Positions 19,659-63,576 of a stretch of 64,000 nt of DNA are shown here, one piece after another. Position numbers and translations under genes: made by a program. The notes under the pieces are model-generated. The model ran no database searches. It had not been told where the DNA came from and was given only the letters and a program-made list of their open reading frames with translations. The stretch lies in the sequence record MZ443780.1; one strand, written 5' to 3'. Every line of letters begins with the position of its first letter. The stretch's first letter is position 1.

Positions 19659-19917
19659 CTCTATCCTCTAAAACAAATTGTAGTGTGCCCTGTATATTTA
19701 CAGCATTCAGGCGCTTACCTGTCTGTGCAATCAGGCCATTCAACACGCCGATAAGATCAGCGCTGTAGCAGTTCTCAGCAATCTTGTGGACGTACATATC
19801 GTCAGGCACATCGCCTGGGTTAAGCTGCCAAGCAGTACGCAAGGCAGCTCCCATGAAGGCCGGACGCTCCACCAGATGCTTGTTCAAAAACGAACATACA
19901 TCTTCGGCAGTTATCAT
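19624..19917 (-). CDS. Hypothetical protein
   Basis: 97 aa, ATGA overlap with the polymerase stop. Confidence 0.5.
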   Translation of the reverse strand: MITAEDVCSFLNKHLVERPAFMGAALRTAWQLNPGDVPDDMYVHKIAENCYSADLIGVLNGLIAQTGKRLNAVNIQGTLQFVLEDRDEDLSITEEPR

Positions 19918-40958: not shown

Positions 40959-42845
40959 TTACTTCATTGCCGCAAGACGTTTACGGCGCGCTTTGGCTTC
41001 TTCGCGCATGTAGACGACTTCTTCCTTTGCTTGGGCAAGAGCAAGTTCAAGCGCACGATCACAAATGGCCTCAATGACCTGCTCAGGCGTTTCAGTGGTC
41101 TGCACGATCAGGTTGCCGCTACGTGAAAGCATCTCAGCATTAGGATAGAGTTCCTCTCTAGCCTGTCCGATACACAGTTCGTCGTCAATATCAATACGGT
41201 AGATCAGTGTGTGAATCTCCGTCTTCTTGAACTTGTGTTCCTTACGCTCAAGCATAGCACGTAACTTAGAACGGAAATCTCGGCGTGGGTCAATCGCCAC
41301 ATACTTCCAACCGTCGAATACTTTCTTCGCACACTCGTAGTAACGATCGTCCACACTGTTCTTGTTGCGCTCAAGACTCACAAGAGTCGCAGCAGGACAG
41401 AACGGTGACATGTTGGCGAGTGAACCTATAGCAGGTGCAAGCACATACTCAGCGCGGTAACTATCGCCAAGTTCGTATTCTTCATCAACATACTTGGTCT
41501 GCACGTCACCTGTATTGATACGAGATGCGTTGTACCAGAATGCGCTCTCAGGGTTGTTGGTGTATTTGACGAACGACCAAATCTGAGACAGAGCAGCAGG
41601 GTACGACCAATTGTGAAGACTGTCTTCTCGGTTGCTGTAGAAGTCTACGTCACCCAGATTCGCATCAAGGAAGTTCTGACGTCTATCACGCGGTAACTTG
41701 TCGATGAAGATAGCCATAGCTCTAGGTCTACTGGACATCTTCTCCCACAGCATGAGCGTAGTTGGATCGTCAACACCAAGAGTACCGAAGACGATATCAA
41801 TGAAGTCACCGAACTCTCGATAGTGTTTGTTGACTAACAGCTCGGTAGCGCTGCGCACATAGAACTTAGGCTGACCCCACTTCTCACGCGCAAGCGCGAC
41901 TGCAACGCTCGGATAGCGTTCGATATAACTCAGGGCAACGTCTTCCGCTTCTTTGTTCTTCGTAGCAGTCAGGCGTTTGATAAACGCGTTAACATCACCA
42001 TGCAGCATCGGGCTTTCGAGGTCATAGTCGAACTCTTCCCAGCGACGATCAGGATAGAGCTTGCTACTCAGTTCGTACATGCCCTTGCGTTCGGTAGTTG
42101 CAATGAACGGATTGATGTGTTCGTCCAACCACTCTTGCAGCACATGGACAAAAGGCATCTTAGAGTCAGGATAGGCGAACTCCACCAGATACAGAGCATT
42201 CACTTTCTCAGACCCGACAAACTTATCAGCAGCTTTCACCTTTGTGCGTTCGAAGTAAGGCTTGGCAAGACAGCGACCGATAGGCTTGTTAATGTTCTTG
42301 TCAGCAGGGTCAATCAGGTACGCAATCAGAGTACCACCAGCAATATCCTGTTTGACATACTTCTTGTTCGAACCTGTCTTCACGTTCATGCAGCTAACCC
42401 ATCCACGGTCTGTGGACATGCCCGCAATATCATACGGGTGCATCGAGATGCAGATGAGTTGGCGGTTGCGCGTAGCATTCACAATAGACTTGCGATTCGG
42501 ATCAGAGTCGAACATCTTTTTCAGTTCGGCATTCTTCGAAAGCACACGGCCGATTTTAACGATACGACCATGAGAGTCTTTCGCAGTACCTGTCAGGTAA
42601 TCGACAAGCACCATATCTTTTTCCATCAAAGCGTCTACGATCTGAATTGGAGGCTTGACGTTCTGCGCAACGTTTTTGATCACGTTGTCGCTCTTTGCGT
42701 CGATGTAGATACGCATGGCCTTGTGGCCTTTCTTGCCGCTAATCTTTTCGAAAAGACTAAGCAACGTGGGATTTGGTTTCCATCCCTTTCTATACTTACG
42801 ATAGATAGAAGGAGGTAACGCAGAGAGACTTACTTGAATTTCCAT
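40959..42845 (-). CDS. Hypothetical protein with the MEIQVSLS leader
   Basis: 628 aa, preceded by CGCTAATTTT. Confidence 0.65.
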   Translation of the reverse strand: MEIQVSLSALPPSIYRKYRKGWKPNPTLLSLFEKISGKKGHKAMRIYIDAKSDNVIKNVAQNVKPPIQIVDALMEKDMVLVDYLTGTAKDSHGRIVKIGRVLSKNAELKKMFDSDPNRKSIVNATRNRQLICISMHPYDIAGMSTDRGWVSCMNVKTGSNKKYVKQDIAGGTLIAYLIDPADKNINKPIGRCLAKPYFERTKVKAADKFVGSEKVNALYLVEFAYPDSKMPFVHVLQEWLDEHINPFIATTERKGMYELSSKLYPDRRWEEFDYDLESPMLHGDVNAFIKRLTATKNKEAEDVALSYIERYPSVAVALAREKWGQPKFYVRSATELLVNKHYREFGDFIDIVFGTLGVDDPTTLMLWEKMSSRPRAMAIFIDKLPRDRRQNFLDANLGDVDFYSNREDSLHNWSYPAALSQIWSFVKYTNNPESAFWYNASRINTGDVQTKYVDEEYELGDSYRAEYVLAPAIGSLANMSPFCPAATLVSLERNKNSVDDRYYECAKKVFDGWKYVAIDPRRDFRSKLRAMLERKEHKFKKTEIHTLIYRIDIDDELCIGQAREELYPNAEMLSRSGNLIVQTTETPEQVIEAICDRALELALAQAKEEVVYMREEAKARRKRLAAMK

Positions 42846-42904
42846 TAGCGTTTCTCAGTGTTCGAATGGTGCAAAAAATTAGCGTAGAAATGACAAACGC
42901 CCCG

Positions 42905-43414
42905 TTAGGAGCGTCTATTGAATTTGAGCCAGTCATTCCACCAGTAGGCAACAGGCTTGTTTTGTTTGAGTGCGTAGTCGATGCAGTTCTGCGTACCAGA
43001 AGGAGCACCGCAGCACAGGGAGATCAATCTGTCTGTCTCATCGACCATGTAGTGATTTCGTTTGTTCAGAGCAAATCCTGCTTGACCATCCATGTGCTCC
43101 CAATCTTCTTTCGAAGTGACTATGCGCACCTCATGACTTTTGTTGAGCAGACCATCAAGTTCAAACACGCTACTGATTGTCCATCTGGAATTGAACCCAG
43201 GATAAGGCAGACATGAAACAACTTTGTGGCCTAGGTCGATTGCAGCAGTCGCTACTGCCATATCGAAACCTAGAGCACACCCCACATAGATGATAGCATC
43301 GTCCTCTATCGCAAGGACTTTTCTACGAGCGAACGTATAGAGGCGGCGTTTCGCCTCAGGGCTAAAGCCTCCAAGATACTGAGGACGATGGCCAGTGAAG
43401 GATATCTTTTCCAT
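42905..43414 (-). CDS. YpsA-like SLOG-family protein
   Basis: SFTGHRPQ, GCALGFD, RNHYMVD, SGTQNCIDYA. Confidence 0.8.
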   Translation of the reverse strand: MEKISFTGHRPQYLGGFSPEAKRRLYTFARRKVLAIEDDAIIYVGCALGFDMAVATAAIDLGHKVVSCLPYPGFNSRWTISSVFELDGLLNKSHEVRIVTSKEDWEHMDGQAGFALNKRNHYMVDETDRLISLCCGAPSGTQNCIDYALKQNKPVAYWWNDWLKFNRRS

Positions 43415-43454
43415 GTAGGGTATTTACAGAAGCACTTCCCTGTGCGTGGTCTGC

Positions 43455-43820
43455 TTAGACGACTACTTCAAGCTGGTGGTCACCTGAGTTCCACACCATC
43501 TCACGAATGTTGCGTGGCATGATGATGCAGCCGCTTGATGCAGTGCCTGGCGCTTTAATGCTGTCACCATGCATCTGGAATGCAGAGCGACCGAACATCA
43601 CGTTGTCAGCAGCAGGAGTCAAGTCCATTGCGTATGGTCCTGTCTTTGCGCTGGTGCGTGGTGCGTTCAACGTATAGTGACCGACAGGCAGTGGTCCCAT
43701 GCCAACAACTGCTTGCGACTCGTGCTTGTTCTTGTGCTGGCCTTTACCTGCATAGCCGGTAGCGACAACTTTACCTGCTGCGTTATACAGGCGGCCTGTA
43801 GTTTGCTCATATTTCCACAT
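43455..43820 (-). CDS. Tlde1/DUF2778-like L,D-transpeptidase-fold protein
   Basis: Start MWKYEQ at 43820 (GGAG RBS); GYAGKG, GPLPVGHY, RSAFQMHGD, ASSGCII. Confidence 0.75.
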   Translation of the reverse strand: MWKYEQTTGRLYNAAGKVVATGYAGKGQHKNKHESQAVVGMGPLPVGHYTLNAPRTSAKTGPYAMDLTPAADNVMFGRSAFQMHGDSIKAPGTASSGCIIMPRNIREMVWNSGDHQLEVVV

Positions 43821-43845
43821 AGGTACTCCAATATGTGTATAATGG

Positions 43846-43877
43846 AAAAAGGGCCTACACCTTTCGATGCAAGCCCC
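43846..43877 (-). terminator. Rho-independent terminator
   Basis: GGGCTTGCATC-GAAA-GGTGTAGGCCC followed by TTTTT. Confidence 0.8.
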
Positions 43878-44021
43878 AGTATTAGACGATGATCGTCTTA
43901 ACAACGTTACGGTTCTTCTTTGGGTCGAACCACACTTCTTCAATAATCTTGCCCATGCCAAAGTTTATCATCTGCACAGTGCGTCGGCTGACGAGTTGCA
44001 GACGTTTAGACTGGAACATGA

Positions 44022-44531
44022 TTACTCCTTAATCATTTTGACACGCGTGTGGTCGAAGATGCCAAACGTTGGTACGTCATGGTGTTCGCCCTCGTTGCCC
44101 TTGATCGAGTCATATCCCGCAAGGCGCAGAATCTTACTGATCTCAGTGTATTCATCCCACCACATATACACGCGCTTGTGCATACCTTCTGGGATTACTT
44201 TTGCCAACGTGTCTAATCGTTTGACAAGGGTCATCGCCTCATCTTTGCCCACCAGCTTTAACTGAAAGGCTTCCATGATGAGTTGCTTCACTCGTCTATG
44301 AATCTCAGCGAACTTTACTTCCGTCCACAGAGAACGGAATTTCAGGCTGGCGTACCTGCCTGGGTCCGCATGAAATCGGTAGAGTCTCCCACCTTCTGCA
44401 TACTTCTCAGCATACGCACGATCTGGTGTTACCCAAGTCATGTGCTGCTTCTTCGCATGATCGTCAGACCAATCTTCGGCCAGACCGCGATAGTAGATGG
44501 TGGGAGAACTCAGACTGACAAAGATCTGCAA
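44022..44531 (-). CDS. Putative ADP-ribosyltransferase-fold protein with the MQIFVSLS leader
   Basis: IYYRG, WVTPDRAYAEKYA, LAGYDSI, GIFDHTRVK resemble the pattern of ART-like polyvalent-protein domains. Confidence 0.45.
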   Translation of the reverse strand: MQIFVSLSSPTIYYRGLAEDWSDDHAKKQHMTWVTPDRAYAEKYAEGGRLYRFHADPGRYASLKFRSLWTEVKFAEIHRRVKQLIMEAFQLKLVGKDEAMTLVKRLDTLAKVIPEGMHKRVYMWWDEYTEISKILRLAGYDSIKGNEGEHHDVPTFGIFDHTRVKMIKE

Positions 44532-45611
44532 CTACTTGCCGCCTTTCATCCATGAGTTCTGGGCGGCCATACGATCGACCTTCTTGAACTTCTGGAGACG
44601 TTTGATAGATGCTTCCAAACCTTTACGCGCAGACTGCAAGCTGGAGCCAGGTACTGAACCGCCACCATTGCCTCCGAAGTTAGCGAAGCTATCCCACTTG
44701 CCTGTTTTAGGGTTCTTGCTCATACGATAGCTTGCAGTACCGAGTTTGTACTCGATGCTGTTACCTTTGACGCGGAACTTGCCTTTGTCAACACCGCCTT
44801 TCTCAATAAGGCTCTTAACGATGTTGGAGATATCTTTCGAAGCTGGGGCATGATCGTGAGCGTCAATAGACACTTTAGTGCCCGGCACACGACTGGTGGT
44901 ATAGCTGTCCAGAGGAACCTTGCCCGCCATAGGCCTTTCTTTATCTGAATTGCCTTTCAGCATATCATCCAGACTTTTGGCGCCAGCTTTCTTTGTAGGC
45001 GTCTTCGTAGCTTTGGTATCTGCTGCGCGCTTCTTGGTAGTAGTGGCAGCCTTGCCTGTCTTTTTATCGCCTTTAGCACCAATCTCACTGAACTTGTCTT
45101 CGCGCATAAACTTAGGCTTGAACATACCGCGCTTACCAGTGACACCAAACTCAGTCAGCTTGATCGCACGAACAGCCTTCAATGCTTTGGCAAGACCCGG
45201 GCCTGACAGTACAAGGTCAGAGGCAGACAGTGGCAGATTCAAGCCGCCCAGATGATGTTTCTTAGCGTGGGCATTTGCTTCTTTGATAAGAGCTTTCGCC
45301 TGCTTAATGTCAGCAGAAGATTTTGCTTTTTCTGTTTTGTAGGTTTCACGCAGAGCAGTCTTACGTGGGCCTTTAGGTGTTTGGCCAGCTTTGGTGAAAG
45401 CAGTAGCTGCTTTAATGCGAGCAGACATACCGCTAATAGCGGCAGTCTTGGCTTTCTTCAAAAGACCAACAACAGCTTGCAGTTCAGGCTTTGACTCGGT
45501 CGCTACAACCAAAGTAGAAGCACCGCCGACTTTGGCCATTTTGTATACAGATTTCTTTGCCGCAGACTCAGACAGTAGATTGTCTGCGATATTGATTTTA
45601 ATTAGTGCCAT
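44532..45611 (-). CDS. Lys/Ala-rich basic protein, possible internal virion protein
   Basis: Start MALIKINIADNLLSESAAKK at 45611 (GAGG RBS). Confidence 0.6.
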   Translation of the reverse strand: MALIKINIADNLLSESAAKKSVYKMAKVGGASTLVVATESKPELQAVVGLLKKAKTAAISGMSARIKAATAFTKAGQTPKGPRKTALRETYKTEKAKSSADIKQAKALIKEANAHAKKHHLGGLNLPLSASDLVLSGPGLAKALKAVRAIKLTEFGVTGKRGMFKPKFMREDKFSEIGAKGDKKTGKAATTTKKRAADTKATKTPTKKAGAKSLDDMLKGNSDKERPMAGKVPLDSYTTSRVPGTKVSIDAHDHAPASKDISNIVKSLIEKGGVDKGKFRVKGNSIEYKLGTASYRMSKNPKTGKWDSFANFGGNGGGSVPGSSLQSARKGLEASIKRLQKFKKVDRMAAQNSWMKGGK

Positions 45612-45622
45612 TTTTGAGTTCC

Positions 45623-46228
45623 TCAAATCAAGGCATGACCAGGGAGGTCGAAGTTTTTACCGGCGGCATAATCACCCAATGCCTGATACAGCGAGTTACG
45701 CAGCATCTGACCGATGATATCTGAGTTGTGCGCTGACGGGTCCTTGAAAGCAACCTCGATCGCATCAGTGCGTGGGTTGACTACGGCGTAACGCAGAGGA
45801 CAAATCGTCTGCACTTTACACCAAGTGTCCACACGATCTTGCAGTTCAGGTGTCATCTGAATTTTGAAGTCAGACAACTGAAACACAAGACTCTGAATAG
45901 GTGGAGGCGCGGATAAGGAGATGAACTTCCCGTTAGCGTTCAGTCTCTCCATAGCCATAGCCGCGTCGTAGATCGACTGATAGCCTTCACTGACAGTAGT
46001 GAGGCCACTCAGTTTAAAGCTATGCGTTGTCAATCCTTTGCGAATCAACTTGGCGATTTTGAGTTCGTAATCACCAGAATCATCCCGCATGAAAGTGACG
46101 AACGCGTAGAAGGCGAAACCATCATCTTCACGTAAAAGTCTGTGATCTAATACGCGAAAGCCCACGACACTTTGCAGTGCCTGGGCTGTGATTTGCGTCG
46201 CCTTAGAAAGGGAAACGTAAATTTCCAT
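45623..46228 (-). CDS. Hypothetical protein with the MEIYVSLS leader (second ISLSA internally)
   Basis: 201 aa. Confidence 0.65.
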   Translation of the reverse strand: MEIYVSLSKATQITAQALQSVVGFRVLDHRLLREDDGFAFYAFVTFMRDDSGDYELKIAKLIRKGLTTHSFKLSGLTTVSEGYQSIYDAAMAMERLNANGKFISLSAPPPIQSLVFQLSDFKIQMTPELQDRVDTWCKVQTICPLRYAVVNPRTDAIEVAFKDPSAHNSDIIGQMLRNSLYQALGDYAAGKNFDLPGHALI

Positions 46229-46563
46229 TAACGCAGACGAGCGAGAGCCTTTTTAGCTTCTGCCAGAGAAGGCTGAATATCACCTTCATCGTCGAACTCA
46301 CCTTCGTAGCGCAGGTCGATACCGGTGACGTTGAAGCCTTCGTCTTCGTCTTTGGTGATGATGCCGAAGCGAGCAGTGTCACCGTTAACGCCGATAAAGC
46401 GCATGTCGAGAATGTCGTTCGGACCACTCAGGTCAGACGGCATACCGTCGTCGATGATTGCGAACAGTGCTTTCTTGTCCAGACCCTTAAAGAAAGCAGC
46501 CAGTGCAGGTGCAGCAGATTGGGACTTAACAGCATCGTTCAGTTTCAGTTTGATCAGAGACAT
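46228..46563 (-). CDS. Hypothetical protein
   Basis: 111 aa; MSLIKLKLNDAVKSQSAA resembles the N-terminus of 44532..45611. Confidence 0.6.
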   Translation of the reverse strand: MSLIKLKLNDAVKSQSAAPALAAFFKGLDKKALFAIIDDGMPSDLSGPNDILDMRFIGVNGDTARFGIITKDEDEGFNVTGIDLRYEGEFDDEGDIQPSLAEAKKALARLR

Positions 46564-46565
46564 GG

Positions 46566-47138
46566 TCAGTTTACTCCAACTTGTTTAGTGATTGTGATAA
46601 CACGCTGGTACCAACCATAAATGTTATCTTCCTGAGTTTCGTCTGCCTTAGCGATGTTCTTCAACTTCGCAATACGGCAGCCGTTATAGGCATAAGCCAG
46701 AACTTTGATATCACGCACTTTGCAGTACGCAGCAAGAGCAGCGAGCGTCTTCGGACCGACGTTTGCAGCAGGTGCAAAGTCAGGGTAGAGCCTACCGCGA
46801 CCGTTGAGAATATTCAACTGGTCTTGCAATTCAGCGATTGCTGCTGGTGGCCCTGAGTTAACGGCGTAGTCAAACACCCACAGAGCCAGCTCCTGAGAAA
46901 ACTTGGCGATCTCATCGCACTTGCAGAAGTCCCAGAAGTTCTTGCTGTAGATAGCGTAAGCGATCTCATACGGCAAGTTTTGCATATCGCCAGTGTAACC
47001 GTAAGCGCGAGCATTCTTTTGAGTAACGCCCCAACGAGTCGGACCACCACGGTCTGCTGATCGATTCGTATAGGTAGAGCCGCCCTCACGGTCAATCACT
47101 TCGGCAATAGCGTTCTTACGAAACGTTAATGCGTCCAT
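46566..47138 (-). CDS. Glycoside hydrolase family 108 lysozyme with a C-terminal PG-binding domain (endolysin-like)
   Basis: REGG..Y....DRGGPTRWGVT, FDYAVNSG, LQDQLN, NIYGWYQR. Confidence 0.88.
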   Translation of the reverse strand: MDALTFRKNAIAEVIDREGGSTYTNRSADRGGPTRWGVTQKNARAYGYTGDMQNLPYEIAYAIYSKNFWDFCKCDEIAKFSQELALWVFDYAVNSGPPAAIAELQDQLNILNGRGRLYPDFAPAANVGPKTLAALAAYCKVRDIKVLAYAYNGCRIAKLKNIAKADETQEDNIYGWYQRVITITKQVGVN

Positions 47139-47164
47139 AATAGATTCCTCTTTTAGACGAACTA

Positions 47165-47174
47165 AAATTAGCGT
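47165..47174 (-). promoter_or_regulatory. Motif B, (C/A)TAATTT, often CGCTAATTTT (others near 8575, 11024, 14921, 35258, 38869, 39725, 42876, 48089, 54271, 56392)
   Basis: Recurs mostly 24-40 nt upstream of sheath, fibre, lysin and tag-bearing genes. Confidence 0.65.
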
Positions 47175-48049
47175 TAAACGGTTAACTTTTTATACTTAAA
47201 GCTGATCTTAGGTTGAGTCCCCGGATCAGCAGAGACAGGAACAAAATCATCACTAGACAGACTGATAAATGCCTTTAGTGCAGCGTGATAGCAAAATGCC
47301 TTGTCGAGAATAACTGATTCGTCTGCGAGATCTGCCTGACGTTGATACATGCGAGCATCAGTAGTCGATGCAGCGGAGAGCGCAGGCGTACCGTAACCGC
47401 TGTTAGCCACAACACCAGCACTGACAGCAGCTTGCAGCAGTTTAAACTCGGTAGATATTGAGGCACTTGTAGGTATCGCTATGGTTTTATCACAGGCCGA
47501 AACGTTCGTGGTAATCGAAGCAGTGTATGTAAACTGATTACCCTGATCGTGAACATAACGAAAACCTATATTGACTGTACCAGACTGACCGTAAGGACAG
47601 TTAGTACCTGCAAGCTGCACAGGAGGAAGGACAACTGTTGGGTCAGTCAAGTCTGCCATGCTCTTAACGCCGTACGTCAGAAACAGGGTTGTGTTGATAC
47701 CGACACCCATACCATAACTTTGTTCTTCGGCGAATGTAGTTAGGCCAGAGATAGTCCCAGCACCTGAGTATGACACGATATCAGTCGTTGCTTCGATGAG
47801 AGCAGATCTAAGTCGTGTGTACTTTAGAGGGCAGAAGTAATAGCGCCCAGCTTTGCGCCCACGAACAGTATTACAAAAGCCATTAAAGCCTAAAACGCTA
47901 CGAGCACGTTTCGCCAAGAGATTGGCATCTGTAAGGTTGGTTGCAGATACGGTTGGTTCTTCTCGACTGTCAAACAAGAATACATTTGGATGGGCATCAG
48001 TGGGTCCTGATAGTCCAGAAAAAGATGATATGTACTGCATGGTTTCCAC
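47174..48049 (-). CDS. Hypothetical protein
   Basis: 291 aa, S/T/G-rich, preceded by ATAATTT; may start at the ATG at 48040. Confidence 0.55.
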   Translation of the reverse strand: METMQYISSFSGLSGPTDAHPNVFLFDSREEPTVSATNLTDANLLAKRARSVLGFNGFCNTVRGRKAGRYYFCPLKYTRLRSALIEATTDIVSYSGAGTISGLTTFAEEQSYGMGVGINTTLFLTYGVKSMADLTDPTVVLPPVQLAGTNCPYGQSGTVNIGFRYVHDQGNQFTYTASITTNVSACDKTIAIPTSASISTEFKLLQAAVSAGVVANSGYGTPALSAASTTDARMYQRQADLADESVILDKAFCYHAALKAFISLSSDDFVPVSADPGTQPKISFKYKKLTV

Positions 48050-48108
48050 CTCAGAATATTGAGTAAAGGTGCTACGTACTTGACATAAAAATTATCTGTA
48101 GGAACGAC

Positions 48109-48128
48109 AAAAGGGGCCGAAGCCCCTT
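48109..48128 (-). terminator. Rho-independent terminator
   Basis: AAGGGGC-TTCG-GCCCCTTTT. Confidence 0.8.
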
Positions 48129-48474
48129 AGAATGTCCAACGTGTCAACCAAACGATCACTACAGGCCAGATGCCTATATGAGCCAAATAAGCAAAGCGCA
48201 TCAGCTTACCTTTGATGTACTTACCGATAACGATCTCATTCAATGCTCCGTACACGCCAGCAAAAGCAGAGAACAACAGAACGAGAAATGTAATCTGGTC
48301 TGTACTCATTTCAAAGATGCGATAGCCTGCTACGACGAATACCACACAGGAGAAACCGAGAGTCCCGTAGATAGACGATGAGGAAGCGTTCGGCTTGAAC
48401 ACGATATCGTACAGGCCAAAGCTCAACAGAATCGACAGCAGCATTAACGCTTGGTAATCGGATGACATGCGCAC
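48127..48474 (-). CDS. Small multi-pass membrane protein
   Basis: 115 aa with about four hydrophobic segments. Confidence 0.65.
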   Translation of the reverse strand: MRMSSDYQALMLLSILLSFGLYDIVFKPNASSSSIYGTLGFSCVVFVVAGYRIFEMSTDQITFLVLLFSAFAGVYGALNEIVIGKYIKGKLMRFAYLAHIGIWPVVIVWLTRWTF

Positions 48475-48761
48475 TCCACATCTTCTACACTGATAGGTTT
48501 CTTGCGGCGCATATCGAGTGCGAGTTGTGCATTACGTCCGACACGCGCCATAGACTCAAGGTCTTCGTCAGAGTAACCGCTCATGCTTTCTGTGACGATA
48601 GCCATCTTTGTCATCTGGCTAGGAGTCAGATCGTACTGGTCGATGCCGTCAACAAGACCAACACCGAACCCTGCAATCTTGTTCCAGACGTCAGGCACGT
48701 TGTCATCGACTTTAACCATCAACGTTCCGTGACGCGCTACATCGTGAATATTACGAGTCAT
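48444..48761 (-). CDS. Hypothetical protein
   Basis: Likely start MTRNIHD at 48761 (GGGAG RBS). Confidence 0.5.
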   Translation of the reverse strand: MTRNIHDVARHGTLMVKVDDNVPDVWNKIAGFGVGLVDGIDQYDLTPSQMTKMAIVTESMSGYSDEDLESMARVGRNAQLALDMRRKKPISVEDVECACHPITKR

Positions 48762-48762
48762 A

Positions 48763-49482
48763 CTAAACTCCCTGATTGGCGAGATAAGTATCGGTGATGT
48801 TCGAGGTCTTCTCAACGTTACCGCGAATATAACCAATTTCGAATACCTGAACGTTGTGTTTGACAACAGCTTCACCCACTGTCTCACACGTACCGTTATT
48901 CAGATCAATAAACGCCTGACACAAACGGTCTGCGACAGGCTTGGCTAAGATCTTCATCAGCGTATGCTTCTGCACTGCGGACAGTTTGATTGGCAGTGCG
49001 TCAATCTCACGCTCGATGTTCTTCTTACCGCCATCATAAATCCAACGACAGATGGTTGCAGTCAAAGGCTTCTGGTGAGTCTTCGACGGCAACGTATAGA
49101 TGTAGGTCATCAGTCGATAGAACAGGCTGCCGTCAATCGCACGACGTTTGAGATCGTCCAGATACTTGCCAACAGGTTGCAGCTTGGCTTTCTGTGGAAC
49201 CATCTCGTCGAGTTTGAGATCAACGTCGAGGCCGTAGCGCTTCAACGTTTCACTGTGACCAAACACGTAGACAATATGATCAGGCATGTCACGAATCGCA
49301 ACAGCGTTACGCGAATACTCACGCGAGCCAACAACGAAAATGTACTTACGATATTTCTTCGAAGGATCAAGCGTACCACCAGCAGGAACAAACGTCACGC
49401 GGTCAGCATGTCCTTTCTTTTTAAGCCAGCCCATGACTTGCTCTGGGCTTTGGCGTGTTACAGCGATTACAGGCATTGTCAC
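48763..49482 (-). CDS. Hypothetical protein
   Basis: 239 aa, co-transcribed with the SbcC-like gene. Confidence 0.6.
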   Translation of the reverse strand: MTMPVIAVTRQSPEQVMGWLKKKGHADRVTFVPAGGTLDPSKKYRKYIFVVGSREYSRNAVAIRDMPDHIVYVFGHSETLKRYGLDVDLKLDEMVPQKAKLQPVGKYLDDLKRRAIDGSLFYRLMTYIYTLPSKTHQKPLTATICRWIYDGGKKNIEREIDALPIKLSAVQKHTLMKILAKPVADRLCQAFIDLNNGTCETVGEAVVKHNVQVFEIGYIRGNVEKTSNITDTYLANQGV

Positions 49483-49802
49483 TCCACCGTATCGAGAAGT
49501 TGTGATGTGAACTCACGCAGGCGCGCTTCGAGAAACTTACCAGTCTCTGGATGACAGATGAGCTGGTCGTTTTTCAGATAGACACGATTCGACGGTCTAA
49601 GCACTTTGCGCTTTTTAGGATTCATGCGCAGCGCTTGATGTACCGGTGTTGCGTAGAAGTCTTCTTCAACTTCATCCATGCAGTTCACATTGAACACCAC
49701 TTCGTACTTCGCAAACAAATGCAGGTTACGCGTGATAGTGCCCATGTCTATTGGTACGCTGTGCTTCTCATGATCGCGATTAAGCTGTCCGAAGATCATC
49801 AC
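49479..49802 (-). CDS. Hypothetical protein
   Basis: 107 aa, overlapping start and stop codons. Confidence 0.55.
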   Translation of the reverse strand: MMIFGQLNRDHEKHSVPIDMGTITRNLHLFAKYEVVFNVNCMDEVEEDFYATPVHQALRMNPKKRKVLRPSNRVYLKNDQLICHPETGKFLEARLREFTSQLLDTVE

Positions 49803-52129
49803 ATCACCTTACGTGTTAAGACGGACGTGCCGTTCTTCTTGGTCACTGTCCATTGATTATCTGAGAAGTGCTCGACACCGTTAGGCGTTATCCAGTACAC
49901 GTTCGGGATAATCTGCTTGAGTATCGGCAGGAAGTTATTGACGATGTGCTCACTTACTGCTGGGCTGCAACTGTTATCAGGTTCGTCCAGAACGATGAAG
50001 TTAGTACGACGACCCGCTGGAATGAACGGCATAATCGCAACAGCAAACAACAGGCGGAAGCAGTTAGTCTCTGCGCCACTCATGATTGCAATGTCTGTGG
50101 TCTTCTTAGAAGTCACACGCGTAACAGTCGCACCAACACCCTGCTTGGTAGTAAACAGTTGGAAGCGCATAGGCTCAGGGAACACAAGGCCGCTGTACTC
50201 ATTCAGCTTCGCTTCAATCTGCTGCAATCGACCTTCAACTGCTTTCAGCTTGAGTGCGTTGTTGCTGTATGCTTTGTACAGGACTTCGAATACCTTACGC
50301 TTATCAATCATCGGCTGGAGCTTGGCCAACTTGGTACGCAGTTCACGCAGCGTTTCCTCGTAGTGCTCATGCTCCTGAATACGCATCTGAATGCCCTGAG
50401 CTTTGCGATCTTTCTTCTCGATATCCGTGATGAGTTTGTTGAGTTCCTTCTCAATCTTTTTGTATCGACCATCGAGAACGTAGAACGGGTCTTCAGGTTC
50501 GCCTACAGCTTTCAGTGCAGAAGTCAGGTCTTTCAGAATCTCAAGATCCTTGATACGGTTCTTGATCGTCTTACGCGCTTTCTTCGGCTGCTTAACCGCT
50601 TTAGGTTTCTTGAGAGCGTCACGCTTCGCCACCAGCTTCTCGTACTTCTTCGCGGCCTCGAATTGTTCTTCCATCGTATCGAGTTTCTTCCCGATAGACT
50701 TCAACTGCTTCTCAAGTTCTTTGCGGTCATGCTTAGGCTTCTTCACCTTGTTGTCTTTCAACGCGGTGAGTTCTGCATTCAGCTTGTGGTAGTCAATCGC
50801 TTCGATACACTCATCAATGATTGCCTGAGCTTTCGTTGCAGCGCGTGACATAGCTTTCAGGTCAACGTCTTGTCCGCAGGTAGGGCAAGAGTTACCGTCA
50901 TGGTCGTGCTCCTCAAACGCACGATACGCCTGAACTATCGCTTTGGATTCTGCTCGGGCATCTTGTGCCTCTTCCTGAGTTCGTTTAGGAGCTTTGAGCT
51001 TAGACAGCTTTTTACTGAGCTTGTCAACTGCTTCTCGCCAGTCGTCGTATTCTTCTTGTTGCTCATCAACTTTCTCCAACAGCTCCTGCAGGCTTTCTTC
51101 TTCCTTGACCAAAGCGCTGTGCTTCTTACGCAGCTTTTTGTTGTCGAGGTCAGCAACATCGCCGAGAGCTTTGATTTTCTTTTTGACCGATGCGAGTTCT
51201 GCTTCGTATTCTTCGAGGTCAGACACGTACTCATCGTAACGGTCAAACTCCACCAGCATACCACGAAGGTTATTCAGTTCACCTTTCGGATCGTCAGACT
51301 CAATGCCGAGCGTATCGAGCTGGTGCTTGAGCTTTTCGTACTTACGCGCAGACGAACGAGCAGAGCCGAGATCAATCAACTCTTCACCTAAACGGTTACG
51401 GCGTTTCTTCAATTTGTCCGACTGTTCGATGATAGCGGCAAGCGTATTCTTTTCCTGCGCGTGAATGTCCAGCGCGTTCTGTTTACGCTGCGTCACGTCG
51501 AGCATATCAGCCAGGCCTTTAGATTCTGTCTCTGCTTCTTTCGCAAGGTCCAGTTTCTTTTTCAGCGCTATACGGATGTTATCGAACACATCAAGGCCGA
51601 ATAGGTTTGTCAGATACTTGAGTCGATCAGCAGGTGACGAACGCTGGAACGGATGTTCAATCTGCGACTGAATGTAGCAGTAGCTATAGAACTCCTCACG
51701 CGTTAATGGCCAGTGCTTAGTCACCCAAGAACGTGCAACGTCCTGACGATCTACTTTCTGGTCTTCACCGTTGTAGTAAACTTTGTACTTGGTCTTCGTC
51801 TGCACGATGCGAACGATGCCACCAAGAGGTGAGTGCCACGACAGGTCAATCGAGCTATCCTTGCCGAGCATGTTACCCTTGTCTTTCTTTTTCAGGGCAA
51901 GCGGGTCTGCTTCATACAGCAATGTTGGGATAGCACCGAACAGGAGGCTTTTGCCTACACCGTTCGTGTTGTCTTTGACGTTTGGACTATCGAGGTTCTT
52001 ACCACAAATAGTTGCGAAGCCTTCACTGTCCAGTGTGTCGATATCAAGCTCTTTGTACACGCCAACATCGCGGAGATGAATCTCTTTCAGGCCGATGCCG
52101 TGGTTATGTTTCTGCTTCGCTTTGCCCAT
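49799..52129 (-). CDS. SbcC/Rad50-like SMC ATPase
   Basis: NGVGKS (Walker A), YIQSQ (Q-loop), coiled coils around a CPTCG zinc hook, MSGAE (signature), VLDEP (Walker B). Confidence 0.9.
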   Translation of the reverse strand: MGKAKQKHNHGIGLKEIHLRDVGVYKELDIDTLDSEGFATICGKNLDSPNVKDNTNGVGKSLLFGAIPTLLYEADPLALKKKDKGNMLGKDSSIDLSWHSPLGGIVRIVQTKTKYKVYYNGEDQKVDRQDVARSWVTKHWPLTREEFYSYCYIQSQIEHPFQRSSPADRLKYLTNLFGLDVFDNIRIALKKKLDLAKEAETESKGLADMLDVTQRKQNALDIHAQEKNTLAAIIEQSDKLKKRRNRLGEELIDLGSARSSARKYEKLKHQLDTLGIESDDPKGELNNLRGMLVEFDRYDEYVSDLEEYEAELASVKKKIKALGDVADLDNKKLRKKHSALVKEEESLQELLEKVDEQQEEYDDWREAVDKLSKKLSKLKAPKRTQEEAQDARAESKAIVQAYRAFEEHDHDGNSCPTCGQDVDLKAMSRAATKAQAIIDECIEAIDYHKLNAELTALKDNKVKKPKHDRKELEKQLKSIGKKLDTMEEQFEAAKKYEKLVAKRDALKKPKAVKQPKKARKTIKNRIKDLEILKDLTSALKAVGEPEDPFYVLDGRYKKIEKELNKLITDIEKKDRKAQGIQMRIQEHEHYEETLRELRTKLAKLQPMIDKRKVFEVLYKAYSNNALKLKAVEGRLQQIEAKLNEYSGLVFPEPMRFQLFTTKQGVGATVTRVTSKKTTDIAIMSGAETNCFRLLFAVAIMPFIPAGRRTNFIVLDEPDNSCSPAVSEHIVNNFLPILKQIIPNVYWITPNGVEHFSDNQWTVTKKNGTSVLTRKVM

Positions 52130-52317
52130 TAGATGTACTCGCAGGTCTGTTCTTGAATCAGGCCTTTACCGTGAGTCTGTTCGAACACTTCGATCTCATC
52201 ATCGGTATAAGGCTCACCTGCTTCTGCGATAACGTCATACGAAATTGATTCGTCACGCGTATCTGACACAACAGGTTTGATGAGTCGCCACAGAGGTAAT
52301 GCAGTTTTAGTAGTCAT
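52129..52317 (-). CDS. Hypothetical protein
   Basis: 62 aa, overlapping start and stop codons. Confidence 0.55.
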   Translation of the reverse strand: MTTKTALPLWRLIKPVVSDTRDESISYDVIAEAGEPYTDDEIEVFEQTHGKGLIQEQTCEYI

Positions 52318-52526
52318 TAGTGAAATACCTTCTGGCGTTCAACCCAAAGATCAGTAGCACGATACACCTTACGCAGTTCTTCCAGCTTTGCTTCTGGAAC
52401 AGGTGTTGGTGAAGAGAAGATGCACTGCGGTGTCTTCTCCTCTTTGCCTGTTACTGGATTGATATCGGTATCGTGACGCATTACGTTCCAGCACCCGTTA
52501 GTGCGGATATTGATAGTCTGTTCCAC
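52317..52526 (-). CDS. Hypothetical protein
   Basis: 69 aa, first gene after a CTGTAAATA motif. Confidence 0.55.
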   Translation of the reverse strand: MEQTINIRTNGCWNVMRHDTDINPVTGKEEKTPQCIFSSPTPVPEAKLEELRKVYRATDLWVERQKVFH

Positions 52527-52589
52527 TGCAATGTACCTATATTTGGTCTAAATGATATATGCTATTTACAGTTTTAAGGTGTATAGACG

Positions 52590-52620
52590 AAAAGAAGGGC
52601 CACCCTTAGGCAGCCCCTTC
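52590..52620 (-). terminator. Rho-independent terminator spanning a stop codon
   Basis: GAAGGGGCTGCC-TAAG-GGTGGCCCTTC followed by TTTT. Confidence 0.7.
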
Positions 52621-53124
52621 GTACACTTTGCGTTTGCCACCGTCCATGTAGTGGTCTGCATAGAACGGACCGCTAACACCTTTGAGGCCTAGTTTATTTT
52701 TAAGGGTATTCTTACGCGCGAACACATACTTCAAATGCTCGTTGCGTTTTCTTCTGCGCTCTGGCGACCAACCCTTCATCTCGTTTTCAATCTTACGCAC
52801 TGAGGCATCGAGAGAAACGAGGTTCTGATAATCGTTGGTTGCTTTGCTGCACGATGAGAATACCTTACGCACACCGTTGTCGAGATAGTGGTCTTCGTAG
52901 AAAGGACCGCTAACATCGTCTAAGCCTATTCGACGTCTAAGCTGACGGTGCAGACGCTTCGGCCACACCAGCTCGTCATCAATCAGGTGGATTACTGCGG
53001 GCATTGCTTCGCGCTGATCGTTAAGCAAAGAATTGATCTTCGCGTCGATGCGACACAACTCTTTGTAGTCGTCATGAGGCGAAGGACATTGCGCTTTGGA
53101 TAAATCGACAGTGAGTTCCATCAA
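52606..53124 (-). CDS. Hypothetical protein with an internal two-copy repeat
   Basis: GLDDVSGPFYEDHYLDNGVRKVF and GLKGVSGPFYADHYMDGGKRKVY. Confidence 0.65.
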   Translation of the reverse strand: MMELTVDLSKAQCPSPHDDYKELCRIDAKINSLLNDQREAMPAVIHLIDDELVWPKRLHRQLRRRIGLDDVSGPFYEDHYLDNGVRKVFSSCSKATNDYQNLVSLDASVRKIENEMKGWSPERRRKRNEHLKYVFARKNTLKNKLGLKGVSGPFYADHYMDGGKRKVYEGAA

Positions 53125-53567
53125 TACCTCCGAGGCTTTTTAGGCTTCTTGATAGCTGACTTAGGTCGCTTGATACGTTGCAGTGCCTTACGCGCTTCGA
53201 CAATCTGCTTGGCGACAGTAGCACGACGCTCTTTGATTTGCGCAGTGTCCTGTTCAGTACCTTTCAGTTTATCAAGACGGTTCCACTCTTTGACCAAGCG
53301 ATCAACTACAGCAGCACGGGAAACGCGTTGCTGATTGACACGCACAATGTCCTGCTGGGTCTTAACTGAGTTGCGCGTAGCATTGACTTCATCACGCGCT
53401 GACGTTACGCCTTTGGTATCGCCCTCAGATTGCTTGTCGTTAAGTTTCTTACGAGCAACAGCAGCACGGCGTTGTGCTCCCTTGAGATCGTCTTTCGAGT
53501 TCTCTAAGGAAACTTTTGTGTCTTCAAGTGGGCTGGTGCGCACACTCAAACTAACTTGAATTTCCAT
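53121..53567 (-). CDS. Basic coiled-coil protein with the MEIQVSLS leader
   Basis: True start at ATG 53567 (GGAG RBS); the ORF-track extension reads through a terminator. Confidence 0.65.
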   Translation of the reverse strand: MEIQVSLSVRTSPLEDTKVSLENSKDDLKGAQRRAAVARKKLNDKQSEGDTKGVTSARDEVNATRNSVKTQQDIVRVNQQRVSRAAVVDRLVKEWNRLDKLKGTEQDTAQIKERRATVAKQIVEARKALQRIKRPKSAIKKPKKPRRY

Positions 53568-53583
53568 GACGGCTCCAGAAATG

Positions 53584-53610
53584 AAAAAGGGCAGCCGAAG
53601 CCACCCTTTT
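53584..53610 (-). terminator. Terminator of the repeated family
   Basis: AAAAGGGTGGC-TTCG-GCTGCCCTTTTT. Confidence 0.8.
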
Positions 53611-53697
53611 GTAGATGGCGCGCTATGCACCCGACTGTTAAGTCTACTACGATTATTTTACCTCGCAGTAGTGGGCGAGGAGATTAGGATCACCTCC

Positions 53698-54234
53698 TCA
53701 TGCTGATTGAAGATCGAGAAGTTCCTCGTCTTCGATATCAGCGGCAGACCACGAACGAAGCACGGAAGCATTGCCGCGATTGCCTGTCAACATCATTTTG
53801 ATTGACGGCTTAGCATCGCGCTCTGCATAGTGATCGATAAGAGCTTTCTCTGTACCGAACCACAGAATGGAGTGACCACCTTTAGGGCAGATTAAGAACT
53901 GCGCCGGACGCTGAGGTACGTTCAACGTCATGTAGAAATCGCCGGCACCTGTAGGGCCCATCATAGGCATAGGCTTCATGACAGCCATGAAGTCGTTAGC
54001 ATCTTTCAGACGCTTATCGCCGAGCAACCACAGTGCGCCTTCTTCACCTTCACGCACGGCAGACAATGTGCCTTTGCGAGTAGTGATAGATCCGAATGTG
54101 TCTTGATCGAAGCGGGCCAGACCAAAGATAAGTGATGCAAGTTTCTTCAGGTCAGGGGTCGTGCATGGGCTGTCAATTTTCGCCATGCCCTCAGACCCAA
54201 GTGTAATCTTCGAGAGTGAAACAAAGATTTCCAT
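53698..54234 (-). CDS. Hypothetical protein with the MEIFVSLS leader
   Basis: 178 aa, preceded by CGCTAATTTT. Confidence 0.65.
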   Translation of the reverse strand: MEIFVSLSKITLGSEGMAKIDSPCTTPDLKKLASLIFGLARFDQDTFGSITTRKGTLSAVREGEEGALWLLGDKRLKDANDFMAVMKPMPMMGPTGAGDFYMTLNVPQRPAQFLICPKGGHSILWFGTEKALIDHYAERDAKPSIKMMLTGNRGNASVLRSWSAADIEDEELLDLQSA

Positions 54235-54301
54235 TGTTTGTCTTCCAGCGCTATTGTGAATTGTAGTCTAAAATTAGCGTCCCATCAGACATTTCTGAAA
54301 T

Positions 54302-62916: not shown

Positions 62917-63576
62917 TTACTTTTTCTGCGAAACACGCTTCCCGAGCTTGACGCCGATTTGAGTCATGATGCGTTTGACAGTCTCCCCGTCGTGTTCAGC
63001 CATTGCACTCGCTAAACGTTCGCCCTGTTCACGCGATAGCTCTGGCATAATCATTTTCAGCATCTGTGAGCGCATCTTAGCTGATTTAGAGCGTCCTTTC
63101 GAGACAGACACGCCTTCATTCACCTTGAGCGCATTGCTAATCGCTTTCTGCACACGACGATCACCGAAGATATCGCCGAATACGTCACCGAACAGGTCTT
63201 TGAACGATAGACCACCGCTCATAATGTCGTTTTTCGTGAAACGCACAGGCTGTCCGAGAGCGTTTGTCTTCGTGCAGTGCGTGGATTCAACTTCGTTCGT
63301 TGTGCGTCCACCAGCACGGAAGTTCTCGTCAGGACGTGACGCTTTGCCCTCTGCGCCTGGCTTCGTGTTGCCATTACGCAGATCTGCATCACCTTCAACA
63401 GCTTTATCCGGGTCGAACATGTCGTCCGCTTTTGCGCTTTGATTCGCATCAAACGGAATCTTACCTGTCAGCTTGTTTGGATCTGGCCAACTGTCCGGGA
63501 TATCAGACGCAGGTTGTGGTTTGTTCGTCATATCACCGTTAGCTTCGCTGCTCAAGCTGATCTTAATACGTGCCAT
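62917..63576 (-). CDS. Hypothetical protein with a MARIKISLSS leader and a low-complexity N-terminal half
   Basis: 219 aa. Confidence 0.65.
   Translation of the reverse strand: MARIKISLSSEANGDMTNKPQPASDIPDSWPDPNKLTGKIPFDANQSAKADDMFDPDKAVEGDADLRNGNTKPGAEGKASRPDENFRAGGRTTNEVESTHCTKTNALGQPVRFTKNDIMSGGLSFKDLFGDVFGDIFGDRRVQKAISNALKVNEGVSVSKGRSKSAKMRSQMLKMIMPELSREQGERLASAMAEHDGETVKRIMTQIGVKLGKRVSQKK

Follow-up and report, generated by a model that had tools for sequence, protein, structure and literature searches.

A short peptide at one end of a protein can suffice to address diverse cargo into a shell, as illustrated by P1 Dar, by the cargo-loading peptides of encapsulins and by the encapsulation peptides of microcompartments. 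P1 employs longer regions together with helper proteins, the encapsulin peptides are usually C-terminal and those of microcompartments are amphipathic helices. In phage T4, the capsid-targeting sequence (CTS) of the internal proteins IPI, IPII and IPIII and of Alt was reportedly described by Mullaney and Black in 1996. This sequence, which has been reviewed (PMC3012670, PMC5694885), is experimentally established: it binds Alt and the internal proteins to the scaffolding core, gp21 cleaves it off, and it can also load foreign proteins (PMC5694885). In giant phages resembling phiKZ and SPN3US, head-internal proteins are believed to owe their incorporation to their N-terminal regions, and gp53 and gp54 of SPN3US have identical N-termini (PMC5694885). 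Polyvalent proteins in turn assemble 2–15 disparate effector domains on a single polypeptide, and the prediction is that these domains reach the host together with the DNA (Iyer et al. 2017, PMC5512222). Here we analyse a stretch of 64,000 nucleotides (the window, bases 124001-188000 of MZ443780.1) from the Erwinia phage pEa_SNUABM_40 (Alexandravirus, 267,121 bp), in which a number of unrelated proteins open with one short N-terminal tag, MEIxVSLS. With a probability of about two in three, this tag would be a lineage-specific functional counterpart of the T4 CTS that loads cargo into the phage head.

Like the CTS, the tag is a peptide of about ten residues, located at the extreme N-terminus and common to unrelated, fast-evolving accessory proteins. 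The genes concerned lie close to an endolysin and a NUDIX gene in T4 (ipII-ipIII-e-nudE), and here the endolysin gene is followed by g199-g196. In both cases the cargo includes an ADP-ribosyltransferase or a protein like it, the tagged genes here appear to be late, and homologues of two of their products, g192 and g196, bear T4-type tags in T4-like contigs. The N-terminal propeptides of the phiKZ- and SPN3US-like phages differ in that most of them exceed 100 residues and are cut at AxE-type sites, and they do not form one short motif common to several families. With the polyvalent proteins there is an overlap in repertoire (ART-PolyVal, metallopeptidase, NUDIX and GNAT-type domains); however, the proteins described here are separate and small, each with its own short tag, which solves the same delivery problem in another way. 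The P1 Dar, encapsulin and microcompartment peptides have no sequence in common with the tag.

In the pEa_SNUABM_40 record almost all genes are labelled “hypothetical protein”. This phage belongs to a group of jumbo myoviruses that includes the Pseudomonas phages PaBG and Lu11, the Dickeya phages AD1 and JA11-33 and the Erwinia phages Y3, Yoloswag and Alexandra. The group, which has been called “Lupandier”-type, is not phiKZ-like (PMC7412058); PaBG, its type member, encodes a sigma-70-type factor (PMC7412058) and therefore relies on the core of the host RNA polymerase. A nuclear-import signal of the Chimallivirus kind was considered for the tag and rejected, given that the phage belongs to this PaBG/Lu11 group and is not phiKZ-like.

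The strict tag, M-[EQM]-[IM]-x-V-S-L-S, is found at eight protein starts in the whole genome, five of which are inside the window, and three more proteins of the window carry degenerate versions (g197, g209 and g224). These genes are given below with their lengths in amino acids (aa); positions are those of the window unless the record is named.

40959..42845, minus strand: g192 (pEaSNUABM40_00192), 628 aa, opening MEIQVSLSA; tag coded by 42822-42845
44022..44531, minus strand: g196, 169 aa, opening MQIFVSLSS; tag coded by 44508-44531
44532..45611, minus strand: g197, 359 aa, lysine-rich, with the degenerate tag MALIKINIAD
45623..46228, minus strand: g198, 201 aa, opening MEIYVSLSK; tag coded by 46205-46228; its start overlaps the g199 stop
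52606..53121, minus strand: g209, 171 aa, with the degenerate tag MELTVDLSK; directly after g210
53121..53567, minus strand: g210, 148 aa, basic, opening MEIQVSLSV; tag coded by 53544-53567
53698..54234, minus strand: g211, 178 aa, opening MEIFVSLSK; tag coded by 54211-54234
62917..63576, minus strand: g224, 219 aa, with the variant tag MARIKISLSS, which has one extra residue
record 91784, minus strand: g123, a NUDIX hydrolase of 152 aa, strict tag MMIKVSLSA
record 196089, plus strand: a protein of 167 aa, strict tag MEIYVSLSQ
record 200369, plus strand: a protein of 109 aa with a faint Csm6-HEPN match, strict tag MEMLVSLSH

A six-frame translation of the window contains five instances of [EQ]I.VSLS, every one of them right behind the start codon of a long open reading frame (ORF). 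When a position matrix built from the tags was used to score the 8,320 candidate start codons of the whole genome, eight starts reached 19.5–25.2; the next one was that of g209 (MELTVDLSK, window 53121) at 11.3, and the remainder stayed below 9. This distribution is bimodal and is not a matter of chance. All six N-termini listed in a first-pass annotation of the window are present at the minus-strand starts it had given, and the genome-wide scoring, carried out where that annotation had proposed a proteome-wide scan, added the three strict cases outside the window. As to homologues of the degenerate cases, the g197 homologue of Y3 is a separate gene with the strict tag MKIFISLS, g209 orthologues in relatives open MEITVDLS and MEIVISFS, and the gene of the Yersinia phage fHe-Yen9-02 at the position corresponding to g224 opens MKISISLN. 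In fHe-Yen9-02 (L008 26767-28440) and Yoloswag (L009 26487-28124) a single fusion protein of about 550 aa combines the homologues of g198 and g197, and the junction retains an internal tag-like stretch (MKITLSLCS / MSLIRLTIPG). The tag is also informative on start sites: g196 begins with a TTG codon, one codon past the upstream stop, and in AD1 the annotated start of gp191 (L007 19082-19681) is internal to an ORF that begins MEIYVSLSK at 19681, overlapping the gp192 stop.

The conservation concerns the peptide. Among 57 distinct tag-coding starts, Ser6 is encoded by AGY in 33 and by TCN in 23, Ser8 by AGY in 27 and by TCN in 30; all six leucine codons are in use at Leu7, and seven codons serve the valine/isoleucine positions. 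Because the serine codons swap between AGY and TCN and the leucine codons vary, selection acts at the peptide level, as the first-pass annotation had argued from the differing codons. These data contradict the idea that the conserved element is a nucleic acid, be it a 5' coding-region element that governs the initiation of translation or the stability of the mRNA, or a patch for cassette recombination, and we consider it very improbable. Some observations would fit it: the first three codons are biased, being mostly ATG GAA ATY, and several tagged genes have weak Shine-Dalgarno sequences. Moreover, in T-even phages the tag-coding sequence also flanks the hypervariable internal-protein loci. 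However, exchanging AGY for TCN takes at least two base changes at each of the two serines, the DNA held in common is too short and too degenerate for a recombination patch, and the versions in Lu11 and in T4-like contigs occupy the same place with a wholly different DNA sequence.

The tag is also hardly a remnant of a common ancestor. If the tagged proteins were diverged paralogues, with the tag as the last part still recognisable, one would account for the fact that only the first 8–9 residues are shared, and duplication is indeed common within single families such as that of g192. Yet an all-against-all BLASTP comparison of the tagged proteins minus their first nine residues gave a best pair at E = 0.097; nothing is common past residue 9, in line with the earlier remark that similarity stops right after the tag. 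The proteins fall into differing Pfam and PHROG families, with folds as different as NUDIX, ART-PolyVal, GNAT, SprT-like and Acb1. The tagged ORFs of the loci examined cluster into 19 groups, of which about 17 are genuine, with lengths of 77–919 aa, and the NUDIX orthologue of PaBG does without the tag. Paralogy is thus largely refuted and, of the explanations considered, barely credible.

Across the clade the tag conforms to M-[EQK]-[IL]-x-[VI]-S-[LI]-S. Its positions 3, 5 and 7 are hydrophobic, whereas 6 and 8 hold small polar residues, as in an amphipathic beta-strand. The tag is kept in orthologues down to 30–40 % identity (AD1, Y3, Yoloswag, JA29 and fHe-Yen9-02), and each of these phages has further tagged proteins that are missing from pEa_SNUABM_40. 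The family with the widest conservation is that of g211. The tag-bearing clade comprises Alexandravirus, Sasquatchvirus (Y3), Yoloswagvirus, Salmondvirus, fHe-Yen9-02 and uncultured relatives. In IMG/VR, two narrow back-translated patterns matched 71 and 34 stretches. The genuine ones, in which the tag opens a long ORF, were on contigs of about 210–268 kb and on one 39-kb fragment with a g192-family gene; the remaining matches were internal or within short ORFs, although other codon combinations outside the clade could escape such patterns. A scan of the whole PaBG genome found neither the tag nor any other recurrent N-terminus besides that of tail-fibre paralogues.

This restriction to one clade has a bearing on what reads the tag. 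A short peptide that is exposed at the N-terminus, keeps a constant spacing from Met1 and has no evident cleavage site could instead determine another fate within the cell without any packaging: it could be a degron, add a beta-strand to a chaperone or hub protein, or recruit proteins to a site of assembly or replication, and several tagged genes do lie among replication and recombination genes (clamp loader, SbcCD). Since the tag is clade-specific, a phage-encoded receptor fits better than host machinery, and with no tag seen in unrelated phages in the IMG/VR scans, a host protease or chaperone is an unlikely reader. We regard an intracellular fate as unlikely overall, also in view of the cargo and of its homologues in T4-like phages (see below).

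The tag is a detachable N-terminal module that lies outside the folds of its carriers. The alignment of the NUDIX protein g123 with its PaBG orthologue gp30 begins at g123 residue 13, with MRTRKSSG of PaBG opposite KKPRKQSG; relative to gp30, which has no tag, g123 has 14 extra residues at its N-terminus (MMIKVSLSAKLPSE), and the Pfam NUDIX match starts only at residue 21. PaBG had been tried as a proxy proteome on account of its annotated structural proteins, and apart from showing that the NUDIX tag is an add-on it was uninformative, its whole genome being without any tag. When a g196 profile was searched against 1.84 billion representative proteins, most of the matches to the 102 relatives found started at profile positions 8–14, past the tag, and 11 of the 102 are domains within proteins of 2,000–5,000 residues. 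In an AlphaFold2 model of g192 (111 homologues; mean pLDDT 93.8, pTM 0.86), residues 1–7 form the sole run of three or more residues with a pLDDT below 50, the first helix beginning at residue 12.

The strongest evidence for a role in head loading comes from homologous cargo in other phage lineages. A T4-like contig with matches to Gp23, Portal_T4, gp19 and gp15 (L126) has, in its structural module, seven genes that open MK[TS]FKQFIxE or a close variant, among them a member of the g196 family (MKTFKQFITEK-IFYRG) and an ART-PolyVal protein (MISFKQFINES). On a 166-kb contig with a T4-type RNA ligase and other T4-like genes (L121), the start MITFK[DE]FL is common to five tandem paralogues of the g192 family and to a sixth, unrelated protein, and on a third contig (L125) a g192-family gene opening MNFKQFLLTEK is located between terminase and sheath genes. 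For comparison, T4 ipII and ipIII open MKTYQEFIAE and ipI opens MKTFKEFTST (NC_000866). The metagenomic tags are plainly of the T4 type, judging by their sequences, and end in I/L-x-E. Lu11 has yet another version: at least ten clustered genes (0200-0213; L123 4833-17692) open MKIQLA[VLI]A, including three g192-family proteins of 627–899 aa and a weakly ART-PolyVal-like protein. Homologous cargo, as read from these sequences, is thus seen to bear the tag of the phage lineage in which it resides, and within each lineage unrelated proteins have that tag in common.

The simplest reading of this exchange is that the T4-type, the Lu11 and the MEIxVSLS tags would do the same job. A purely intracellular fate of the tag leaves unexplained why homologous cargo in T4-like phages should carry a head-targeting sequence. 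It is possible, on a tentative view of the same comparison, that head-loading tags form a general system that co-evolves with the phage lineage, the g192-type “SRHPYD” and the stand-alone ART-PolyVal families carrying MKTFKQFIxE (T4-like), MKIQLAVA (Lu11) or MEIxVSLS (Alexandravirus, Yoloswagvirus and Salmondvirus); the last two might then act as uncleaved beta-strands docking on a lineage-specific prohead receptor.

A second line of evidence is the setting in which the tagged genes are expressed. The elements and neighbouring genes concerned are, in window coordinates:

42876..42883, minus strand: GCTAATTT, motif of the putative late-promoter type, 30 nt upstream of the g192 start
43455-43820, minus strand: gene of an untagged Tlde1-domain protein (PF10908, 3e-15), flanked by tagged genes within the endolysin operon
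46566-47138, minus strand: endolysin gene g200, named after the RefSeq annotation of relatives
47165..47172, minus strand: GCTAATTT, 26 nt upstream of g200, heading the operon with g199, g198, g197 and g196
53584..53609, minus strand: terminator-like hairpin and T run, then TTCTGGAG (Shine-Dalgarno), between g211 and g210
54271..54278, minus strand: GCTAATTT, motif of the putative late-promoter type, 36 nt upstream of the g211 start

The motif GCTAATTT occurs 15 times in the genome, and 11 of the 15 copies sit 26–45 nt ahead of a start codon and are oriented like the gene; further sites elsewhere in the record are at 5325+, 66669-, 86736-, 92321-, 105321-, 120055-, 162876- and 208548+. Besides endolysin, g192, g211 and others, the genes behind it include the portal operon, the tail sheath gene and the baseplate-wedge operon, as identified by PHROG. 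It looks like the -10 element of the late promoters of the phage. The statement that two tagged genes directly follow a “motif B” agrees with this, since that motif is most likely GCTAATTT, found 30–36 nt before the starts at 42845 and 54234. A copy is likewise found before g124, the stop of which overlaps with the beginning of the tagged NUDIX gene g123. Between the endolysin gene and the downstream g198 and g196 no intervening promoter or terminator was seen. One-mismatch variants ([GAT][CA]TAATTT) are found before an apparent second sheath gene, before the g225-g224 operon and before an operon ending in the major capsid gene; g225, upstream of g224, has ACTAATTT 22 nt before its start, and the Yoloswag orthologue of g192 has ACTAATTT in the equivalent position. 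Before the g211 orthologues of AD1, Y3, JA29 and fHe-Yen9-02 the motif is kept as [GT]CTAATTT despite diverged intergenic DNA. The Lu11 record labels a related motif, TGTAAATA, a putative middle/late promoter; a further copy of TGTAAATA, which bears no annotation, lies 70 nt upstream of the Lu11 NUDIX gene. A second recurrent arrangement, consisting of a hairpin, a T run, TTCTGGAG and 6–9 nt to the ATG, stands before both g210 and the tagged g245 (record 200310-200368), and before g210 it is kept in AD1, Y3 and fHe-Yen9-02.

If the tagged genes are indeed late, host-modifying enzymes, among them the ADP-ribosyltransferase-like g196 and a NUDIX hydrolase, would be made together with virion parts, which is sensible mainly if they are carried to the next cell. 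This is the case of T4 Alt, a late-made ADP-ribosyltransferase that is packaged in the head (PMC5512222). Conversely, late-made enzymes directed at the host would find little left to act on if the tag merely settled their fate in the cell that makes them.

The same gene neighbourhoods raise the question whether the cargo might be loaded into the tail or baseplate instead, in the manner of the N-terminal signals of contractile injection systems. The phage is a myovirus whose tagged NUDIX gene is situated in the region of the baseplate and tail-fibre genes, and a T4-like homologue of g196 adjoins a gp5-type baseplate hub gene. Furthermore, the Tlde1-domain protein shares an operon with g196 and g198, and Tlde1 is an L,D-transpeptidase-like fold of type VI effectors. 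However, the Tlde1 protein itself is untagged, and some ten proteins of up to 628 aa would be a large load for the lumen of a tube that holds the tape measure. In addition, the T4 sequence found on homologous cargo targets the prohead core (PMC5694885). Loading into the tail is, in our view, quite unlikely.

A third line is the nature of the cargo, whose domains are of kinds known or predicted to be injected together with phage DNA. Pfam finds ART-PolyVal on a tagged JA29 protein (E = 2.3e-27), a SprT-like metallopeptidase on a tagged protein of an uncultured relative (3e-10) and a GNAT acetyltransferase on a tagged fHe-Yen9-02 protein. On a 172-kb contig from a more distant relative, a protein opening MKIFVSLSS matches the anti-CBASS phosphodiesterase Acb1 (1.6e-14), and further tagged starts on this contig read MKLMVSLSG and MKLIVSLSAL. 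In T4 the product of 57B, which we take to be Acb1, opens MMEFKDFSTG, resembling MKTFKEFTST of ipI; the name in the record is “RNA ligase”. The T4 gene orders (L124, NC_000866 62000-78000) are ipII-ipIII-e(endolysin)-nudE(NUDIX) and ipI-57B. Where a domain was recognised, each tagged protein had one, and two modules occur only in the g198-g197 fusion of Yoloswag and fHe-Yen9-02.

The 169-aa protein g196 had been called ART-like, and a profile search supports this. There was no direct Pfam match at E <= 0.1, and hhalign against the JA29 ART-PolyVal protein gave a probability of 1.5 %. The g196 profile nevertheless falls on the ART-PolyVal regions of giant proteins: it matches P0142 at 1781-1950 (E ~1e-24), where Pfam places ART-PolyVal at 1777-1959, and P0155 at 1122-1284 (E ~1e-20), where Pfam places it at 1117-1287. 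By these matches g196 is a predicted stand-alone, divergent ADP-ribosyltransferase-like domain of the ART-PolyVal type. It has a YRG motif in place of the YHG[ST] of ART-PolyVal, and in the alignment E147 is invariant while the second Glu of a possible ExE motif varies. The AlphaFold2 model of g196 was poor (pLDDT 56 from a 10-sequence alignment) and was left unused.

In g192 the tag is followed by a widespread, uncharacterised domain of about 260 aa (“ISRHPYDIAGMSTDRGWxSCM”) and then by a helical C-terminal half. The domain recurs in large phages: Agrobacterium phage Atu_ph07 has it in eight places, a T4-like contig in tandem arrays, and DUF4116 repeats often come after it. Its invariant residues are S134, Y138, D139, S144, T145, W149, S151, C152, Y176, D182 and R191. 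It looks like an enzyme, with no activity assigned. Sequence searches of the PDB with g192, g211 and the g196 profile gave no match, and Foldseek with the g192 model found no PDB entry at E <= 0.001 and only uncharacterised viral proteins. The basic protein g210, in which a conserved SPLED stands behind the tag, is probably a coiled coil.

A number of observations weigh against head loading. The tag, a beta-strand pattern with small polar residues, bears no resemblance to the unrelated T4 sequence MKT[FY]xEF[IT]xE. The literature yielded no published virion proteome for AD1, Y3, Yoloswag, Alexandravirus or fHe-Yen9-02, and the protein names in the Y3 and AD1 records are homology-based only. 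The late timing of the tagged genes is deduced from the shared promoter-like motif; no recognisable GCTAATTT accompanies the two strict-tag genes on the plus strand (record 196089 and 200369), and a terminator-like hairpin parts g211 from g210. Within the g192 family the N-terminus grades into the tag (MKLVDLSEALKPS versus MEIQVSLSALPPS), so that part of the similarity could be ancestral there. The contigs with T4-type tags are metagenomic, and these tags were judged by their likeness to T4 ipI-III rather than by experiment. Finally, neither a conserved [LI]xE nor any other conserved site was found after the tag across the families, and in g196 the first candidate, LAE at residues 17–19, comes after the YRG motif, inside the domain.

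The last point also concerns the proposal that the prohead protease removes the tag. Without a conserved [LI]xE behind it, such removal is doubtful, and in this respect the tag would differ from the CTS in a phage that is itself of another, “Lupandier”-type lineage (PMC7412058): it may simply stay on. Candidate sites are specific to single families, namely SPLE in g210, PSE in g123 and GSE in g211. A cut after PSE would leave g123 beginning where its PaBG orthologue begins. The SPLED of g210, at residues 12–16, recalls the major capsid protein g142 (record 106874-107971), which has GAPIED at residues 16–21 and GSPLED in PaBG, and on which the PHROG capsid profile begins only at residue 27; SPLED and GAPIED may represent a shared site of the maturation protease, a suggestive resemblance confined to a single family. 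Nothing comparable to these two cases, g123 and g210, was seen in the other families. By PHROG, the phage has a head maturation protease, g146 (3e-126, no Pfam match); in the PaBG and Y3 records its orthologues bear the name putative prohead core protein protease. Near the head module, two putative late genes, g145 (record 110912-112054) and g152 (118167-120014), have KMPT-N domains (PF20294). The product of g152 opens MILSVSAS, a weak look-alike that was not counted as a tag.

On balance, we favour loading into the head because the tag is modular, its genes are in operons of late type, the cargo is of types known or predicted to be injected and homologues of this cargo bear T4-type tags. These four lines are independent and indirect and they agree, which stops short of proof that the proteins are packaged; their presence in virions, their recognition by the prohead and their ejection are what we infer. 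A mechanism can be outlined as follows. This clade of jumbo myoviruses would attach a short, unstructured N-terminal address label to many unrelated accessory proteins, which would be made late, from the type of promoter that also drives structural genes. A phage-encoded component of the prohead, either the scaffold/core or the inner shell, would recognise the free N-terminal peptide. The tagged proteins would end up inside the head and leave it along with the DNA when the next cell is infected. The delivered enzymes (NUDIX, ART-PolyVal-type, GNAT, SprT-like, Acb1-type and several of no assigned function) could then act before any phage gene is expressed. What would be new here is not the kind of mechanism, which is known, but its occurrence with a different sequence, in a different phage lineage and perhaps without cleavage.

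At the level of annotation, the tag already corrects start sites, as for the TTG start of g196 and the start of AD1 gp191. If the interpretation as a head-loading signal is right, its eight residues would offer a simple means of bringing proteins of choice into the jumbo phages of Erwinia and Dickeya, which are already under development against fire blight and soft rot. It would also give, from sequence, a listing of the proteins that a jumbo phage injects with its DNA, including anti-defence and host-modifying enzymes that act prior to transcription, and recurrent N-termini in a genome would more generally list the counter-defence arsenal that a phage carries pre-packaged. In a relative, this arsenal would include the anti-CBASS enzyme Acb1, delivered as a ready-made protein; packaging of Acb1, of a NUDIX protein or of an ADP-ribosyltransferase would change our view of the timing of CBASS, NAD-based and other defences. 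The T4 strategy, in which diverse defence proteins have only a targeting sequence in common, would then not be a peculiarity of the T-even phages. Distant lineages of myoviruses would have reinvented or re-tuned it with unrelated tags, which would make the co-evolution of tag and receptor tractable.

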